Shown: positions 43,308 through 63,075, numbered from the stretch's first letter. The stretch is 64,000 nucleotides of DNA from Pocillopora damicornis (GCF_003704095.1 NW_020846761.1:620001-684000), one strand, 5' to 3'. Notes: generated by a model not told the origin, from the letters alone. Made by a program: numbers and translations.

Positions 43308-46300
43308 TTAAACACTACTCTCCATCACACCCTGTGACTCCAGGCAGTACCGAGTACAGAGATCTTCTGTGTCTGACTCCTCTTCCATTAGCGTCTTCAA
43401 CGCCATTCCAAGAGCATCATATGTGGCACCACTACCCTGAGCCCCTACCCAAGTACACAGTGTAGCAAAGCACTTGTCAAACAGGCTTGTTTTATCGCGC
43501 TCAATATGCTCCCGATGTTTTTCGTTTAGCAGGATGCGGCACAATTGCTCCCACTTGTTACCGACATCATGCGCCAGGCGCAGTTGATCATCATGAGACA
43601 CCACACCAGATTTAAACTGCAACTGGGCTGTAGGGATAGTAAAAATTGGTTTACTAACACAGTTTGGGTAATTCAATCGTTTTACTCAAAAAGATGAGTA
43701 AATAGGCCATCTAATCAACACGGGACATGGAAATAATATTGACATTCAGTTGAATGGAAAAATTAACTGTCAATTTCAACATTCTGGAATTACTTTGGCT
43801 AGCTTTGAGCGCCACCGGCTCAAATTCAAAGGCAAAGTGCATTTTTCAAATGTGTCATTAATCAGGGCTTTGTGAAAGTCTCATCCATGCAAAGCAAGAG
43901 AGTTGTAATAATTAATCCCCAAATAACAAATTATTTACCTGGATTCTGATTTGTGCAGCGTAAATACTATTGAACAAAAATAAATAAATTCATTAAACCC
44001 AGATCTGGATAAAGAAAATGACCAAGCTTTCACGTTATACATTTCAATCCAATCAACAAAATCCACCGTCTTGTAACTCAAAATCGTTCTGCAGAAAAAA
44101 AGTCTATCTAACGGTAACCAGGCAACTGATTACACAAACTAGGATGATTTATGATCACCTCCAAGACCAAGATTATACAATCAATCAAAACTAAGGCTAT
44201 ACAATCAAACAACAAATCAAAATCACTGAGTCATTCACTAAATACATATATCAATTCAGATATTTCTAATGAAAAAAACTACAAACGGCATCTAAGTTTC
44301 TTTTGTATCACACAGTGACTTTGGAAAACTGTTGTGTCTTGATGGATGGTGTTTTTCAAAAATGTCAAACTTGATGTTCTTAATGAACAAATCATGTGGT
44401 CCACTCTTATAATACCACCTTGTCCAAGTCTCCCAGATTTCGCTTTTTCCCATCACCACTAATCCCCCCCCCCCCCCCCCCCCCCCCCCAACACCTATTT
44501 AGTAACTGAACACATACTAGAGGCCAGTCCAAAATCCCTCTCTTTTCCATGTAATTTTGTGCAGAGAAATTCGGTTGACTTTGGTCACATTACCTAATCC
44601 TGATTATTGGTCAACTGAATCGTTAATAGTTCCCATACCTTAACCCAAGGCTTAAGTTTTTCCTCGCTGAGCAAACAACTTGATGATCTGTAGGTTCTGT
44701 CACACATCAAAGGCTTTGATACTAAAGGAATGAAGTGTGAACAGTCAGGATGAGGACATAAGCGTGCACGATGCAATGAACAGCCCTCGGGATCTTCGTC
44801 TTCACCCATACAGAGGTCACATCGGGCACACAGCTCCCACTCCATGGAGTGTAACCACGGATGCTGCACACAAAGAGATTTCAGGGTACGTTCTACAGTA
44901 CTGAAAAACAAAGCAACTTTAACAAAGTAAATCTGCACCACTTTGTCACCGACGAATTTTTAGACGAGATGTTTTGGCTTACACTATTTCTGTTTAACGC
45001 TCACTATAGGATACGAATTGTATGCTGAGCCTGTGTTTAAACACTCAATATATCTCCTATACTAAGTTGTTAACTCAGAATAAAATACTCACGCTACTCA
45101 CTCTTTGAACCACACCAGTTCTTTTTCAACGAAAAAGCTCCTTGGTATCAGTTTAAACAGAATGCGAGGAACAACCTTCTTTGTACTTGTGTATCATATC
45201 ATTTACAATAGTGTGATTTACGAATTGAAACATTGTTACTTCAAATGTTTATCAGTATAAAAACTGGAAAGGGGGACTCAACTAAACTTCCCGTTTCCAT
45301 TGCTATTTTTAATTTCTTATGTAATGCTTTAAAAATTACGAAGAGTTGATCATACAGTCTGATCTTCCAGTTGAGAGTTCAGACGTTGTGCTCTAACAGG
45401 ACTGATTCGCATTTGATGATGAATTTTTTGCTCATGTGAAGTACAAGATTCCGAATTAAATTTATTTTTGCACATCACCAACCTGCAAATATGTCGGCAG
45501 ATGGAAGCCGTTTCTCGTCCATCCTCAAACTTCCCTTCAAAAACCAGATGAACCGTTATGACACTCTTAAAGCAGGCTAACGTCAAGTTGTAGTTGCTTT
45601 GCTGGCCGACGACAAATCGAGCTGCGTTTGCGAAAAGCTTCGGTGGCGTGGCAGGACACTCGGGAGAACTTTGTTGACCAAATAACACCAGGAATCTGCA
45701 GAACACGCCATAAGGTACATATCCAGAGGAAAATTTTATGTAAATTGGAGCAAGCTTCCCTTGACCAATCAGTACAGATATATCTTCGTCTGGTTTAGCA
45801 GTCAGCATCGAGGGCACGAGATAGACCACTTTGCCATTTTGCTCATTCCAGTGGCAGATGAGGTTGCTTTTTTCCATAATTAAAATTAGCATTTCTTGGG
45901 AGAGTTCAAGTTTAAGTTTCTTACATGTATTTTCAATAAGTTCTTTAGACAAGATCCCATCTTTAGCAAGAATCCGGCGATGTTCCCGAATTTTCATCGT
46001 CTCTCTCTTGCCGGGGACACTTCTAAGAATTTCACAGAATACACTGATCAGCCATTGCGGGTCGAGTATCACCAGACTGTTGAACAGATTCGACTCGTCT
46101 TTAAAGTAGAGAACTGCGCCGCAATCGCACAAGAAATGCAACAATTCCTCGCTATCTTCTTCCACTTCGAATTGGCAAATTTTGTTAGAAACTTCCCTGA
46201 ATTCCATTCTGGTGATGTGCTTGTATCCTTTGCGGGCTAAGTGATGAAGTAACTTCTCAACGTGGAGCCACTGCAACGGTATGAGTTGCTTGGTGTGAGG

Positions 46301-52300: not shown

Positions 52301-55007
52301 CAATGAATGTGTGATCATAATTACCTTCCCCTGTACACAATAAGGAATCATCTGTGCTTCCATTGGTAACCTCTTGTCTGCTTACAGGCTTGGTCAGTTT
52401 GATTGGCAGCCAATATCCTGTGTTGTTTTGGTAAAACTACACGACATAATAAACAATTATTATGATACATCTGGTACATCAACCCTTTATAAACACATTC
52501 AATAAGAACTGCTTCACATGTTTCTTCCACCTACTTTAATTAAGAAATTGCTTAGAGTTGAAAATTTTTTATAAAATTAAAGGAAACATTTAGTCACAAA
52601 ATCTGAGCCCTCAATCAACCAAATTTTAATCATGCTAAAGAAAATAAAGTGATTTCAGACATGATTTGCTTTGCATTTAGAGTAAAAAGTCTTTTTCCCC
52701 ACTGCAGGATATGCTTTCACTGAGGGATGGCAAGTTCATTTACATGTAAATTTCAACTTACCAAGCAACTTCCCTGTTTCTTAACATGCATGGAAAGTCT
52801 CTATTTTTCTCAAAATTATCTTGGTCAAAGATGCACCCTCTCCTTCCCACTCCCACCCTTCACTTCTCGGGAGTTGTGCCTTAGCTGCTAAAGATTAAAG
52901 TTGTCTTTTCATTTCACCTTGCCATCTCCTTTCAACAGTACTGAGTTTAGTATATAGAGTGTTAATTAGAAGATGTAAGTATGTACTGTAAAGTAAAGAG
53001 GTACTGAGTATAGTTTATAGTATGTTAATTAAAAGATGTAAGTAAGTAGTGTAATGTGGAGATTTATAATTATGATAATTTCAATTTAACTTTAATGAGG
53101 TTGTCTGAAAGTGAAGGAAAATTGTTATGTAAACTTCATCTATTTAACTAAGACATTTTGTAAGTTATTAGTAGTTAGTTGTGGGTGGGGTTAGTATGTG
53201 GGTGAAAGTAGTTTTTAACTTAAATTTAAGTCTTTAACACTTAATTTGTCATAGCTTCAACTGAAACTTGGTAATCTTCAATGTTGATACTCACTGCCAC
53301 CATGTCAGAGATGCTGTCAAAATACTCTCGATCATTAACTGTGAATTGCATCTTCCTGCTCCACGACACCTTCCAGTGGCTGGTTTTGCCATCAATACTA
53401 TGACATCAAAGAGCAGAACAACCCTTTCAATGTTGAAATATTACCTCAAAATCTATGAAGAGCTATGAGGTTCAAAAGTAATAAATTAATGGGGGGAGGA
53501 GAGGTAGCTAAGTATGTATTATCATGAATAAATGTTCATTAACATTATGCAGTAACTGGACGTAGACTGTAGTACAGCCAAACTTACCATACAAAAATGA
53601 TGTAATCTCCAGGATAACTTAAACTCTCTTTGACAAGGAATTGTCCACTGCTTGCAGAGGACATGATCTGTTCTGCTTGGTCACAAGATATTTTCCCATG
53701 GAACCAGCTGTGTTGAAAGCCGCAAAGAAAACAAATTTATAATAAATTACTACAGGGGGCATGTGCATGTACTGTAACTTATATAAAACTGCTTTTACCC
53801 TTTTTTCTTTTCATAATCCAAACTCTATACTAATAATTGCTGTAGACTTTTTGTTAAGGTCTGTGTTGCAACTACAAAGAATCTAACTTTCTTTTGGTTC
53901 AGTCTTGAATCTAGCCCAGTATTTTTTCTTTTTCCTTTTTTTTATAAACTTGGATTGGATGAATTATATAAATTGGATGAAAATTAATTGGCCTGCATCA
54001 TATGAAGGAAAACGTTTAAATAAAACGTTTAAAACATTGAGCAAACAAACGAATGATACTCAGCAAAGTAAGGTGTCACCAATGTGAAAAAAGATGGATG
54101 GACAATTGAATGAATTAGTGAGCAGATGAACAAAGGAAAATAATGCGGAGAATGAATTAAACATTATACAGACATAAGAATGAAACTCAGCAATGAAAAC
54201 ATCTATCACCATGTAAATAAATGGAATAAGAGATGAATGATCGATTGAATGTCAATGAGCGAAGAAATGAATAAAAAAATTTTAACACGCAAGCTCATAT
54301 CTGGTTATTTTAGCGCGAAATAATGCGAGTAATCATTATACCTATAGTTGCTCATGTCAATATTCAAATAATACATTACTACCTTTCTAATTATTGGAAA
54401 ATGTACCAAATATGACGGCGTCTTGATTTCTCGGAAATTTACTTATTAAAGAAGATCACGTACTTGTGCTGTTCGCGCACTCATATAACATCAAAACTTA
54501 CTTTTTCTCCCATGGATGGATTTGCACGTACACAACTGAACCATGATTGACTCCAGATTCGTCCAAACTGTTAAAGGATTTCCCTAAGCATTTGTTCTGG
54601 TAAGGCGAGTCTATTTGGCGCAGAAACAGACTGTGTTCTGGAACACCAAGCATCGCCCGACTCGACAACTTCTTCCTCAGATCGTTGATGGTGGAAGATT
54701 GCCCTTCTTCGAGAGTTACCTTCAGAACTCTTCCTGTTTCGGTCACAGCATTGATAAAAAATGAATTTACTGAGTTCAGCTGTTTGTAGGCCACATGAAT
54801 GAGCGAGCCTGGTTTTATCAAATACCCCACACCAATGCTATGACAATCGATCTCTTCGCCATTTCTTTTCTGCGAAAGACGCTGAGAGGTAGGAGGAAGC
54901 CCAGTAGCTTGAGATATCACTTCTTTTAGCTTGTCAACAGCGTCTGAAGATTGCACCTCCACAGCAATTGTCTTTGCGTCCAATAAGTTGACATGAACAC
55001 GCATCAT
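43308..55007 (-). CDS. ROCO-family GTPase with architecture UBL-UBL-SH2-UBL-SH2-Roc-COR-(Cys/His-rich)-Death, 13 exons, 1349 aa
   Basis: Exons 55007-54502, 53707-53588, 53397-53295, 52436-52325, 51173-50897, 50363-50235, 49391-49292, 48908-48836, 48231-47686, 46956-45483, 44900-44639, 43966-43939, 43627-43308 total 4050 nt, all GT-AG and phase-compatible. SH2 motifs WFHGKIS..FLVKES and WYVGKMS..FLIRDS. Roc motifs GQDHAGKTS, STAGV, WDFAGQ, VGTHAD. COR motifs IPLQW, LHFLCDCGAVLYF, VILDPQWL, YLVPSML. Death domain LAHDVGNKWEQLCRIL...W..AQGSGATYDAL. Confidence 0.85.
44464..44489. repeat. Poly-C tract (26 nt), intronic
   Basis: Read directly from the sequence; homopolymer length is uncertain. Confidence 0.85.
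47279..47520. mobile_element. ~240-bp MITE in a ROCO gene intron
   Basis: Terminal inverted repeats ctggccctggttgtttaaag / ctttgaacaactcggccctg (15/20), plus subterminal TAACCC(A/T)GGGTTA palindromes at both ends. Confidence 0.7.
51425..51860. mobile_element. ~436-bp MITE with 25-bp terminal inverted repeats in a ROCO gene intron
   Basis: tttattttatagatactgatgaaat matches the reverse complement of atttcatcagtacctatataataaa at 23/25. No coding capacity. Confidence 0.75.
52938..53063. repeat. 63-bp tandem duplication, intronic
   Basis: gtactgagt.tagt.tatag..tgttaatta.aagatgtaagta begins at both 52938 and 53001. Confidence 0.8.
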
Positions 55008-55164: not shown

Positions 55165-55219
55165 GGAACTGAAAGTGACGTCACGTTTCCGTTTCTGGGA
55201 AACGAACCAATTCTTCCGG
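55165..55219. promoter_or_regulatory. Dense TF-site cluster upstream of the ROCO gene (EICE, CRE, ISRE, GAS and ETS-like)
   Basis: GGAACTGAAA 55165-55174; TGACGTCA 55176-55183; GTTTCCGTTTC (=GAAACGGAAAC) 55185-55195; TTCTGGGAA 55193-55201; CTTCCGG 55213-55219. Confidence 0.55.
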
Positions 55220-55658: not shown

Positions 55659-58569
55659 ATGGATTTGGATAGCAAAATTTCTGCCCTAAAAGATTTTACT
55701 TCCTTTGGATCGTCATCGAAAAATGACTCATCTTCCTCACGGGTCAATCAAAGTTCAAATTCTTCTTCCTCGAATGGATGGGGAAATTGGATTGCTAAAG
55801 GGGAGAAGGACCCATTTTTACCCTCTTTGGTGGGTTTTGACCGAAAATTTTTAATTTTTTCTCCTTTTGGTTTTTGAACATCTTATATATCAGTCACTAG
55901 TTCGATGATATAAATCATATCACTTTCAACTTAGCTTCAATGGCAGAGCAATCAAAGCTACATAAATATAAAACGATAATCTCGCTAAATATGACACGTC
56001 ATTAGTAGCTCTGGGCCTTCCAAGGGGTTTGAACGGCTAGCGACGTGACCCTGGAAACGTTATCATCAGCGAAAGAATACAAAATTACCTCGCTAACGCT
56101 CAGCGATGTACGTGATGAGCATTGTAAATCAAAAGGACAGGCTGGAACACTTTACCTGCAGCTGAATGTACATGTAGACATCTGTCATTAATACTATTTA
56201 TGTAAGACTTGTCAGAAAATTCATTTTATTTCATTTTTTATTTTATTTTCATTGAGTTGGAAATCTCGTCAGTTTCAGAGTACAAGAGACCCTTATAATT
56301 ATTGGAAGAAAATCCCATGACAGGATTATCTGTATCTATGGGCATGGTGACTTACTTATTTTCATTATTGTTTACAGTCTAAAACACAACGTATCACAGG
56401 TTTCTTTCTGTTGCTGCTGTTAGGGATCTTCTGCTTTGTAATGGTAAGTTAAAAGGATTAAGATTATGTACACCTCTCCACAGGTTGTTCTCTAACAAAT
56501 AACTGTTACTTATCTTTTCACTTATTACTGTTAAATTAATAATTGTACTTAGCAATACTCCTTACCCTCTACACCCTATCATTATTCATATTTACCAAGC
56601 ATTTCTCTTCACATTTACTGTCATGGTGAAGACAAGGAGAATTTGTGTGGCAGTCAGGAGCTTCTTAAATTGGTGATCATGTCCTTTATTCTCATGACCT
56701 TTACATATGATTTTAGGATGATACTGTAAGGAGAAATAAAAAGCCAGTTGCTCTAAGGGGTTAAAGGGATACAAGTATCTTACTGGAAAATTAAACATGG
56801 AGCAGTCACCCTTCACTTTTTTCTGAAAATTGTTATTTCTGTGTCATATAACTGTTCTGGTTTCTTAACTCATTAAAGGCTGGTCTTATTGCACCTGTTA
56901 TGCTGTTAAAGGCAAGAAAATTTGTCCTTCTCTACACAATGGGAAGTTTGTTTACCATAGGAAGGTAATGTTTTAAATGTATCTCAAGCCCTGAGCTCCT
57001 TGTTAATCAGTTGGGTACACCCTTAAAATTGATTTTTTCCACTATGAAAGGTTCAATTTAGAAGTTCACTTGAGTCATTGATCAAGTTATGTGTGACTTA
57101 TTTCCGATTGCAGGGGAATATATGATATTCACATGGCCAGAATTTTGTGTTCAATTGTTGTCATAGTATTGCTCGCAAGTCCATTTAAGCAAAAGAGTGA
57201 GATGTATCAGCAGCTTTAGAATATAAATTTAAAACCCCACATTGCAATTGGAAATGTAATTTTTTGTTTGTCACATATATGGTAAATTGATATTTGGATA
57301 AAGACAATTTTAAAACACATTTATGGGAAATAAATTCAAAGTCCAGCTGCTTGTTAACTCAGTGTGCAGAAATGGTACTTCAACTGTAAATTTAAAATAA
57401 CTATTAAAAGAATTCTTTCTACAGAAAACATTTAGTGTCTTTAAACAAAGATGAATTCTATGGCGTTGTGATATTTTGAAATTAAGATGCGCTATGTATA
57501 AAATAAAGCTGAAAATTTGATAAACTCAATGATGTAGAAAAATTTTTTTTTTCAAATGTGAAAATATAAATTGTTAATTCACTGAGCGAGAGGAAGGTAT
57601 CACGTTCTTTAAACAGGTGAAATTTTGATATTTCATTTAATGTTTATGTAATGAACATGTTTTGTACACAGATGTATTGTCAAAAAGCAGCTAAAGATTC
57701 GTGTGTGTCTGGTCGTATGTTTGTACAGTCATGTGACTATAAAAGGCCTCCTTATCTTTTCTACTGGCATTTTAATCAGTGTCCAAATTCATTTCAACCA
57801 AGATTTCTTTAGTAAGGTTTGCATCACATCCTTTTCTTTGGTTTCAGTTTTTCTTTACTCTGGGGTCCAGTCAATCATGTCAAACATCTGTGTTCACTTG
57901 AAAGGCTTCCTTTTACTGCTGCTTACTTTGGATCAATGTTTGCAACACTTTACATGGCCATGATTGTAAGTTGTGATGCCTGTTCAATAAAAAATTATTT
58001 CCCTGTTGAATATAGATAAATCAATTATTAACCGATTATCTAAAAGTATAATTCTTATGTGTCTTCATTGATCGTCTAACATAGATGAGATAAGGTTTCT
58101 CTCACATTCAAGCAAATTTGTATTCAAATACTTACAGACTGACATCATACCAATTCTTTTGTCAGGTAAAGAGTACATTGTTGACAGCAGTTTGTGCTTT
58201 GGTCCAAATTCTTGCCCTAGTATGGTAAGTTTGGTTCAGATATTATTCTGAGCCACGGGATTGCAATGTTCCCCAATGAAGCACATTGTGCAGAAGGCTA
58301 AACAAAGTTAAAACAAATGACGGCGTTTATTCAGAAACTTATGGGAAGTAAAGCTAAATAAAATGATGTCATGTTGAAATGTAACTGACTTGTTTATTCA
58401 CAAGGTAACATTACAATGTTAACATTAACCAGGCAATTTTTGCTTCTCTGTTTTTTTCCATAGGTACTTTGTCAGCTATATTCCTGGTGGGACAACAGGC
58501 ATGAAATTTTTTACCAAGCTTTTCTCATCTGCAGTAACAAAAACAGTTTCTAGCACCCTTCCTGTCTAG
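55659..58569 (+). CDS. SFT2D3: Vesicle transport protein SFT2 family (SFT2C/yeast Sft2-like), 6 exons
   Basis: Exons 55659-55829, 56378-56443, 56879-56964, 57848-57965, 58166-58224, 58464-58569. Motifs LSKTQRI, LLKARKFVLLYTMGSLF, SFSLLWGP..H, ERLPFTAAY, WYFVSYIPGG and C-terminal LPV; four TM segments. Confidence 0.88.
56561..56768 (-). mobile_element. MITE relic, copy B (same family as 27027-27215)
   Basis: Reverse complement aligns with 27027-27215; ends are ccctttaacccctt / gggtgtagagggtaag. Confidence 0.6.
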
Positions 58570-59174
58570 AAATGGATATTTTTTGGTCAGCTTGACACCC
58601 TGCCCCAGAGGTAGTAAACGGACTGCAGATTAGGAATTTAATTTGTCCGATGATATGCAATTTCACCAACGGAGCATGGTCAGGGGGTTGCTATGGCAAA
58701 TTTGGTACGTGAGATGTCGGTATTATGGATGGAAAGATGGCTGCTGACCGACAAGAAGGCATGTTTACCTAGCCTAACTTTCAAGTTGAGGGCTGTTGGT
58801 TACTAAGGTCAATAACTTCCCTGAGCGTGGAAGTCAGACGAATACCCTCGTGAAAACTGCGTCAAGATGACAAAGACTCAAGAAAAGTGTAATTTGAACG
58901 AGGCCTGGGGTTGAATTTCAGCAGATGATGTCTATCACGCATAAAGGTCATTCACCATACACGTGTCACGTCCGCCATTTAGCTCATCGCTAAGTTGCAA
59001 AGTATTTACAAACGATCTAGATCTGGCGGCGGCTGCAATACCGGTGACTTCGTACAAACTCATTCATAAAGTAAAAAATGAGGACTTAAATTATAAAGAA
59101 AACGCCGATTATTATCTTTTATGAGCCAAAGGTTTTTAAATCAGTTGAGGTACAGGGAGGGGTAAGGAAGATTT

Positions 59175-59420
59175 AGGTTTTAGGTTTTAGATTTAGGTTT
59201 TAGATTTAGGCTTACCCCTTAATTATGTTGGATTGAAGAAGTAATCCAACATAATTAAGGGGTAAGTTCCTAAACAAAATGTGGTGCTGCGTCGGTGGGA
59301 GGGTTAGCAGGTAATTTAGTGTTAACAACTGAGTTGAAAACGTAAATTGGCCACCGTAAAGGGTAAAAAAGCTGACGTTTCGAGCGTTAGCCCTTCGTCA
59401 GAGCGATTGTGCGTAAAGTG
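59175..59420 (-). mobile_element. Penelope-like element terminus with terminal inversion and candidate 10-bp TSD
   Basis: Flanked by the direct repeat AGGAAGATTT (59165-59174 and 59421-59430). Contains a (TTTAGG/TTTAGA)n run at 59171-59210, a perfect 24-bp inverted repeat (59211-59234/59243-59266) and a hammerhead motif. A homologous relic lies at 32370-32520. Confidence 0.7.
59371..59404 (-). ncRNA. Minimal type I hammerhead ribozyme motif (Penelope-associated)
   Basis: Minus strand reads GCU-CUGACGA-A-GGGC-UAAC-GCUC-GAAAC-GUC-AGC. It has an intact CUGANGA/GAAA core, a 4-bp stem II, a palindromic ACGU stem III and a 3-bp stem I. Predicted cleavage is after GUC, between 59374 and 59373. Confidence 0.75.
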
Positions 59421-63065: not shown

Positions 63066-63075
63066 NNNNNNNNNN
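63066..63075. other. Assembly gap (10 N)
   Basis: Run of n characters. Confidence 1.

Follow-up and report, generated by a model that had tools for sequence, protein, structure and literature searches.

The stretch of DNA described here, referred to below as the window, comprises 64,000 nucleotides of eukaryotic sequence (GC content 37–43%) from the coral Pocillopora damicornis (GCF_003704095.1, NW_020846761.1:620001-684000). Its minus strand carries, from 55007 to 43308, a single spliced, polyadenylated and expressed stony-coral gene that encodes a 1349-amino-acid protein of the ROCO family. The architecture of this protein was confirmed as UBL-UBL-SH2-UBL-SH2-Roc-COR-(Cys/His-rich module)-Death, where UBL stands for a ubiquitin-like domain. 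Support came from Pfam searches of the individual exons, an AlphaFold model of exon 1 and the orthologues of the gene, and the domain order is the one claimed in an initial annotation made from the DNA sequence.

For most ROCO GTPases, including LRRK2, DAPK1 and their relatives, the signal that sets the switch is poorly understood. A switch placed between recognisable docking domains (SH2, UBL) and an output domain (Death) makes both input and output experimentally approachable. We lean towards the view that the gene is a conserved member of a domain-shuffled coral ROCO family, and we infer from its sequence that the product may be an adaptor under GTP control that connects docking through the UBL and SH2 domains with the assembly of Death-fold proteins.

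Gene model, transcript and orthologues

The candidate gene was rebuilt from stop-to-stop frames and by direct reading of the sequence, which gave 13 exons. A script that carries the phase from exon to exon found GT..AG at every intron, compatible phases and no internal stop. The coding length sums to 4050 nt, or 1349 codons and a stop, with GT-AG sites throughout, and the size of the open reading frame (ORF) and the exon count are identical to those first annotated. The ATG is at 55007, with an upstream in-frame stop read at about 55069, and the stop codon occupies 43308-43310.

RNA contigs from 4 runs of 4 studies were mapped over 43400-49399. Runs X1, X17 and X18 are polyA or oligo-dT libraries, and X2 is only presumed to be RNA. 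Five joints were present in all four runs (43965-6/44639, 44900/45483, 46956/47686, 48230-1/48835-6 and 48908/49292) and a sixth, 43627/43939, in three of the four. In addition, a loose contig end at 49392 (X1, X18) reads, in reverse complement, as the final 30 bases of exon 6. Because of these six joints and the loose end reading into exon 6, exons 6 to 13 are considered to be joined as modelled; 7 of the 12 junctions were thus seen directly in RNA. Among them is the SH2-to-Roc join, 48836/48231, which had been named in advance as the test of one gene against two and was found in 4 runs from 4 studies. RNA contigs of low depth also span introns and resemble unspliced precursor RNA.

The same exon order and lengths were found in five further coral assemblies (L013, L014/15, L016, L018 and the TARA scaffold L001). 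Another TARA scaffold, L019, is a nearer relative and is syntenic. Exon 1 has 24 exon-length homologues at 46–86% identity, and the identities for exon 10 form a graded series from 98% to 52%, followed by a drop to paralogues at 46% or less. Over exons 1 to 4, comparison with L019 gave a synonymous divergence (dS) of 0.20 and a ratio of nonsynonymous to synonymous divergence (dN/dS) of 0.36; by part, the ratio was 0.73 for UBL1, 0.14 for UBL2 and 0.10 for the segment SH2-1a of the first SH2 domain. Deep allelic lineages were considered as the source of the L019 divergence and dropped, the exon dS of 0.20 being close to the intron divergence of about 20%, as for another taxon. Contigs L010-L012 were rejected as orthologues, being too short or other paralogues. 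Taken together, these comparisons indicate purifying selection on the window gene throughout stony corals, where it is a single-copy orthologue. In one assembly (ENA ERZ25068219), two tandem paralogues lie 41 kb apart on the same contig with about 85% DNA identity (L017:10001-18652 and L018:10001-20453).

Annotated orthologues were found with a profile that had an 823-aa paralogue at its head, so that long proteins could become candidates. Stylophora pistillata has XP_022793007.1 (‘uncharacterized protein LOC111332016’, 1183 aa), in which the Cys/His module and Death domain are missing owing to the end of the model inside intron 10, and PFX24155.1/A0A2B4S6P7 (P0346), which is named ‘Tyrosine-protein kinase CSK’ and has no kinase domain. 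Oculina patagonica has XP_078372314.1 (1315 aa), and Montipora capricornis/foliosa has XP_068699496.1 and XP_068754393.1 (1341 aa). The Montipora cluster, at 90% identity or more, contains at least 8 RNA-derived sequences of the Logan collection, each with a 1341-aa ORF. Identity to the window gene, exon by exon, is 64–88% in Stylophora, 52–75% in Oculina and 43–78% in Montipora. The order of the domains is unchanged, and Pfam recognises ubiquitin, two SH2 domains, Roc and COR-A in the full-length orthologues. The gene is thus conserved in three coral families (Pocilloporidae, Oculinidae and Acroporidae). Together these families span both major stony-coral clades, and for that reason the gene is not the oddity of one species.

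The initial annotation treated this combination of domains as apparently undescribed, a statement that needs some qualification. The literature searched had no account of the architecture or of the orthologue accessions; the combination is, however, present in public databases (NCBI/UniRef) solely as automatic predictions, uncharacterised or misnamed, from Stylophora, Oculina and Montipora. An annotation problem is exposed by the misnaming as ‘Tyrosine-protein kinase CSK’ and by the Death domain, which escapes the Pfam cut-off in each of the three full-length annotated orthologues that were scanned.

Domains of the predicted protein

Pfam and structure searches were made with single exons of the window gene or with natural full-length orthologues from databases; all exons are on the minus strand. 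Exon 1 (54502..55007) begins with the start codon and encodes UBL1 and UBL2 as a beta-grasp tandem with an HPW motif at its end; exon 5 (50897..51173) encodes UBL3, which also ends in HPW. Pfam ubiquitin matched UBL1 in exon 1 (7.6e-11 and 1.3e-10 in separate searches) and UBL3 in exon 5 (5.7e-7), and UBL2, the second half of exon 1, resembles UBL3 (BLASTP 2e-6). AlphaFold modelled exon 1 from 25 sequences as two beta-grasp units (pLDDT 86, pTM 0.81). Foldseek aligned this model over about 160 columns with linear di-ubiquitin, ISG15 and FAT10; di-ubiquitin and ISG15 matched over both halves, with a probability of 1.00. The second UBL is supported by this fit over both halves.

The first SH2 domain (SH2-1) is encoded by exons 2 to 4. 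Exon 2 (53588..53707) holds its N-terminal half, WFHGK...FLVKES, with Lys at betaB5; exon 3 (53295..53397) the middle, or betaD region (HWKV), with a weak Pfam SH2 match to model positions 41-75; and exon 4 (52325..52436), a phase-compatible GT-AG exon, the C-terminal end and a linker. The second (SH2-2) is similarly divided. Exon 6 (50235..50363) encodes the N-terminal half, WYVGK...FLIRDS, with Arg at betaB5; exon 7 (49292..49391) the middle, with the RNA joint 48908/49292 in 4 runs; and exon 8 (48836..48908) the C-terminal end (HYK...), with RNA joints on both sides in 4 runs. Model positions 1-40 of Pfam SH2 were matched by exon 2 (3.3e-9, 37.2 bits) and exon 6 (1.6e-9, 38.2 bits), against a cut-off of 21, and the two copies together score 112–134 bits in full-length orthologues. 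The best matches of exon 2 among solved structures are the C-SH2 of SHP-2 and the SH2 of Csk. Across orthologues exon 2 is 69–95% identical; exon 3 has orthologous exons in L013, L014 and L016, and exon 4 is 65–84% identical in L013, L014, L016 and L019.

Exon 9 (47686..48231), covered by a continuous RNA contig, encodes a linker, the Roc G1 motif (GQDHAGKTS), switch I (STAG) and a Ser-rich insert. The remaining part of Roc, with G3 (WDFAGQ) and G4 (GTHAD), and COR are encoded by exon 10 (45483..46956), which has RNA joints on both sides. Pfam Roc accordingly matches in two parts, model positions 1-37 in exon 9 and 55-91 in exon 10. The G1, G3 and G4 motifs are intact in the window gene and conserved in all orthologues. 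COR lies directly C-terminal of Roc; COR-A in exon 10 scored 70.2 bits against a Pfam cut-off of 35.3, and the COR of the Stylophora orthologue matches the Roco structure 3dpu of C. tepidum (1.7e-13). By sequence the protein is a member of the ROCO family, having a Roc with G1, G3 and G4 and an adjoining COR. The Ser-rich insert between switch I and G3 measures about 150–190 aa from the exon translations and Pfam coordinates, and is exonic by RNA. An insert at this point characterises the subfamily as a whole, as Roc is likewise matched in two stretches in its other members.

Exon 11 (44639..44900), with RNA joints, encodes a Cys/His-rich module that follows COR. An alignment of 16 family members shows its pattern, C-x2-C ... 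C-x2-H ... C-x4-C-x-H ... C ... WF, to be conserved; the exon is matched by 21 of 150 homologues and by no Pfam family. The pattern, common to the whole invertebrate ROCO subfamily, is probably an undescribed zinc-binding module. It is followed by exon 12 (43939..43966), a 28-nt micro-exon with RNA joints on both sides, and by exon 13 (43308..43627), which contains the Death domain and the stop codon.

Pfam Death scored 19.7 bits in exon 13, and the orthologous exons 25.7 bits (L001) and 30.5 bits (L017). Exon 13 also matched residues 1250-1337 of the relative P0051 (phmmer 6e-12), where Pfam Death scores 35.7 bits, and more weakly the death domains of ankyrin, TRADD and FADD. In the three full-length annotated orthologues that were scanned the domain is below the Pfam cut-off (20.2 bits, 13.5 bits and no match). 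The call was accepted because the orthologous exons pass the cut-off and exon 13 matches the Pfam-positive region of P0051; these matches indicate that the window gene has a Death domain C-terminal of Roc-COR.

Leucine-rich repeats (LRR) and a kinase had been described as absent, and this holds: Pfam matched neither of them in the exons of the window gene or in its full-length orthologues. Ankyrin repeats likewise had no Pfam match in the exons or the full-length orthologues, and a NACHT or NB-ARC ATPase had none in the exons of the window gene.

Docking, switching and output

We read the protein as a GTP-regulated adaptor because its layout of docking, switch and Death domains fits the scheme in which AP-GTPase/COR (Roc-COR) units are switches between variable sensor or input domains and effector or adaptor domains (PMC8195603). 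The N-terminal UBL/SH2 cassettes would dock the protein to partners, the Roc-COR unit would set its on/off or oligomeric state, and the Death domain would recruit other Death-fold proteins, leading to apoptosis or innate-immune-type signalling. Death domains act via homotypic assembly. The initial comparison with the sensor-NTPase-effector layout of NLRs is reasonable as an analogy.

Several observations weigh against this reading. The five junctions from exons 1/2 to exons 5/6 and the 5′ end are without direct RNA support, the basis of the junctions being canonical sites, phase and collinear exons of equal length in orthologues. The X1 contig of 4010 nt extends 1991 nt beyond exons 10 and 9 in the 5′ direction; the coding sequence that precedes exon 9 is 1420 nt, so about 571 nt of the contig are unaccounted for. 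The canonical Ile44 patch is missing from the UBLs; Ser takes the position of Ile44 in the window protein, and orthologues have Ser, Tyr or His there. The betaB5 residue of SH2-1 (the Arg of FLVRES) is Lys, as FL[VI]KES, in the window and every orthologue (L001, L013, L014, L016, L017, L018, L019, Stylophora, Oculina and Montipora), and that of SH2-2 is Lys in L001 and L018 and Thr in Montipora. The Ser-rich insert could alter GTPase behaviour. The Death score of exon 13 falls below the Pfam cut-off of 22.6 bits, and the AlphaFold model of this exon was poor (pLDDT 63 from a 3-row alignment) and was not used.

The state of the two SH2 domains bears most directly on how such an adaptor could be triggered. 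The initial annotation proposed a canonical phosphotyrosine-gated switch, in which the docking of an SH2 domain on a receptor or adaptor with phosphorylated tyrosine would drive Roc-COR dimerisation and Death-domain scaffolding. Both SH2s are clear members of the family, nearest to the SHP-2 C-SH2, RasGAP and Csk. SH2-2 retains the betaB5 Arg (FLIRDS here) in the window, Stylophora, Oculina, L013, L016 and L017; SH2-1 has kept His and Lys in betaD, and most orthologues also have Arg at alphaA2 of this domain. Replacement of the betaB5 Arg by Lys is, however, the standard loss-of-binding mutation in SH2 domains. Phosphotyrosine gating is weakened because SH2-1 has Lys everywhere and SH2-2 has Arg, Lys or Thr according to species. 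In lineages with Lys or Thr in SH2-2 neither SH2 would be canonical, judging from these residues, and yet the gene is conserved there. The alphaA2 residue of SH2-1 (exon 2, ‘GKISC’, at about 53685-53687; most corals read GKI[TG]R) is Cys in the window, L019 and Stylophora, a change that appears to erode the phosphate pocket of SH2-1 further in the pocilloporid lineage. Phosphotyrosine reading would be possible at most through SH2-2 in Pocillopora damicornis and would not be a conserved principle of the orthologue group. We consider the canonical switch unlikely.

SH2-1a is the most constrained piece of the protein (dN/dS 0.10, 69–95% identity), and therefore presumably binds something. It may do so without phosphorylation, as part of a scaffold in which rigid UBL-SH2 modules would be permanently attached to the tail of a receptor or to some other protein and Roc-COR-Death would be triggered otherwise. 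In JAK kinases the FERM-SH2 unit is a constitutive docking module of this kind. The invariant Lys of SH2-1, the variable betaB5 of SH2-2 and the gap of only 5–6 residues from the conserved HPW end of the UBL to the start of the SH2 agree with such a scaffold. The retention of the SH2-2 Arg in most lineages does not. The scaffold is to be regarded as doubtful, to the same degree as the canonical switch.

A more specific scheme can also be drawn. SH2-2, through its Arg, would read a phosphorylated receptor while SH2-1 and the UBLs hold a partner, and a GTP-dependent rearrangement of Roc-COR would uncover the Death domain, from which a signalling complex for cell death or NF-kB could form, in pocilloporid and related corals. 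This scheme is a long shot. If true, such a direct wire from tyrosine-kinase signalling to Death-fold assembly would represent a new class of SH2 effector, and no ROCO protein before it would have had its upstream input defined.

The UBLs had also been proposed to link the protein to the proteasome or to serve as decoys for the deubiquitinases of pathogens. Proteins that read ubiquitin would be another candidate anchor in a role of this kind. The sequence of UBL1 is ubiquitin-like (1e-10) and exon 1 models as head-to-tail di-ubiquitin or ISG15. All three UBLs are internal and without the C-terminal Gly-Gly, UBL1 continuing as ...AYKQLNS and UBL2 and UBL3 ending in HPW followed by SH2; the position of Ile44 is Ser, Tyr or His, that equivalent to Val70 is Ala, and UBL1 is the fastest-evolving part (dN/dS 0.73). 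The proposal is unsupported, and a role in the ubiquitin pathway is very improbable. Finally, the idea that two adjacent genes were wrongly fused, or that the locus is a decaying product of exon shuffling, found no support, only the five 5′ junctions being without direct RNA evidence, and is refuted, unless the contigs are chimeric, by the 48231/48836 junction in 4 runs from 4 studies; the intact frame of 1349 codons, the exon order kept in many corals, the whole 1341-aa ORF encoded by Montipora RNA contigs and a dN/dS below 1 make it practically untenable.

Family context and relation to known systems

The initial annotation had described the cnidarian ROCO repertoire as expanded and shuffled, in agreement with a search of the animal's own genome (234,350,878 bases in 4393 contigs). 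This yielded 28 further Roc-COR matches at 27–53% identity. Long relatives in the family have kinase-SH3, NACHT, HEPN_DZIP3 or CAP-Gly at the N-terminus and Death or trypsin at the C-terminus, and in some of them Roc-COR-Death is preceded by kinase-SH3 or HEPN. Polyubiquitin genes aside, the UBL-UBL exon is unique in the genome. From these results, the window gene belongs to a family with twenty-odd Roc-COR paralogues or more, whose end domains have been shuffled. No UBL or SH2 was found in the 150 closest representatives of the Roc-COR exon, which are mostly ORF-sized fragments and hence silent on novelty.

The UBL-SH2 unit of exons 5-8 starts and ends in phase 1, and the first copy (UBL2 with exons 2-4) has the same internal phases, which marks UBL-SH2, as read from the exon boundaries, as a phase 1-1 cassette and a tandemly duplicated shuffling module. 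Of the tandem paralogues described above, L018 is full length; L017 retains UBL-UBL-SH2-UBL-SH2 and Death and has lost the region from the P-loop through exon 12. Its exon 9 remnant could be joined in frame to the Death exon via GGTAAA, which forms Gly-Lys codons in the full gene. This loss of Roc-COR with the frame kept supports modularity. The same GGTAAA occurs in exon 9 of the window gene, near 48160 by our own count, and no joint was found there in the RNA contigs. The gene illustrates the way in which exon shuffling builds coral cell-death and immune repertoires, and extends the SH2 catalogue by a new family.

Some non-coding features of the locus may be recorded here. An interspersed repeat of about 240 bp (47270..47530) lies within intron 9, outside the protein; a first look at the genome gave 516 candidates, of which 40 were scored, all matching at 83–96% identity. 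The spike of RNA depth and the many unrelated loose ends at this position are due to the repeat. In intron 11 there is a 26-base homopolymer (44464-44489; C on the plus strand), where RNA contigs break. A possible acceptor, ttttagcag/g, is found just before the ATG, and a perfect palindromic cyclic AMP response element (CRE, TGACGTCA) at 55176-55183, about 170 nt upstream of it. Farther upstream of the gene, 56456-59333 is 92.6% identical to L019, compared with about 80% for introns and an exon dS of 0.20. On this comparison the segment appears more conserved than neutral sequence, being a regulatory or other functional element or an exon of a neighbouring gene. Scans for Rfam families and tandem repeats gave no relevant match at the locus, and the window has a run of N at 63066-63075.

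A likeness to NLR/STAND proteins and to bacterial AP-GTPase conflict systems is one of layout only, with a sensor or adaptor, an NTPase switch and a Death-fold adaptor (PMC8195603). The window protein differs in being a GTPase rather than a STAND ATPase and in having no sensor domains of the repeat type, and any immune role is putative. SHP-2, Syk/ZAP-70, PLC-gamma and Csk give the best sequence matches for both SH2 domains. In contrast to the tandem-SH2 proteins and Csk, each SH2 of the window protein is preceded by a UBL, a UBL lies between the two, and the betaB5 Arg of SH2-1 is lost.

Reviews of the ROCO family list three groups, LRR-only, LRR-kinase and DAPK1, with no member that has SH2 or UBL domains (PMC6337361). 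With LRRK1/2 and MFHAS1 the window protein shares the Roc-COR core and a G4 of the THxD type, and it differs from them in the absence of LRR, ankyrin, armadillo, WD40 and kinase domains. DAPK1 is similar in its Roc-COR tandem and C-terminal Death domain without LRR. The CaM-kinase (an N-terminal Ser/Thr kinase) and ankyrin repeats of DAPK1 are absent, however, with three UBLs and two SH2s instead, and the window protein has in addition the long insert within Roc and the Cys/His-rich module between COR and Death. The invertebrate Roc-COR(-Death) paralogues, among them the ‘pats1-like’ P0286 of Acropora cervicornis and P0051, P0048 and P0023, belong to the same subfamily (30–46% identity) and resemble the window protein in that Roc is split, a Cys/His module follows COR and a Death domain often stands at the end. 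In place of the UBL and SH2 domains found here, they begin with kinase-SH3, HEPN_DZIP3, NACHT or CAP-Gly, or have no domain at the N-terminus.

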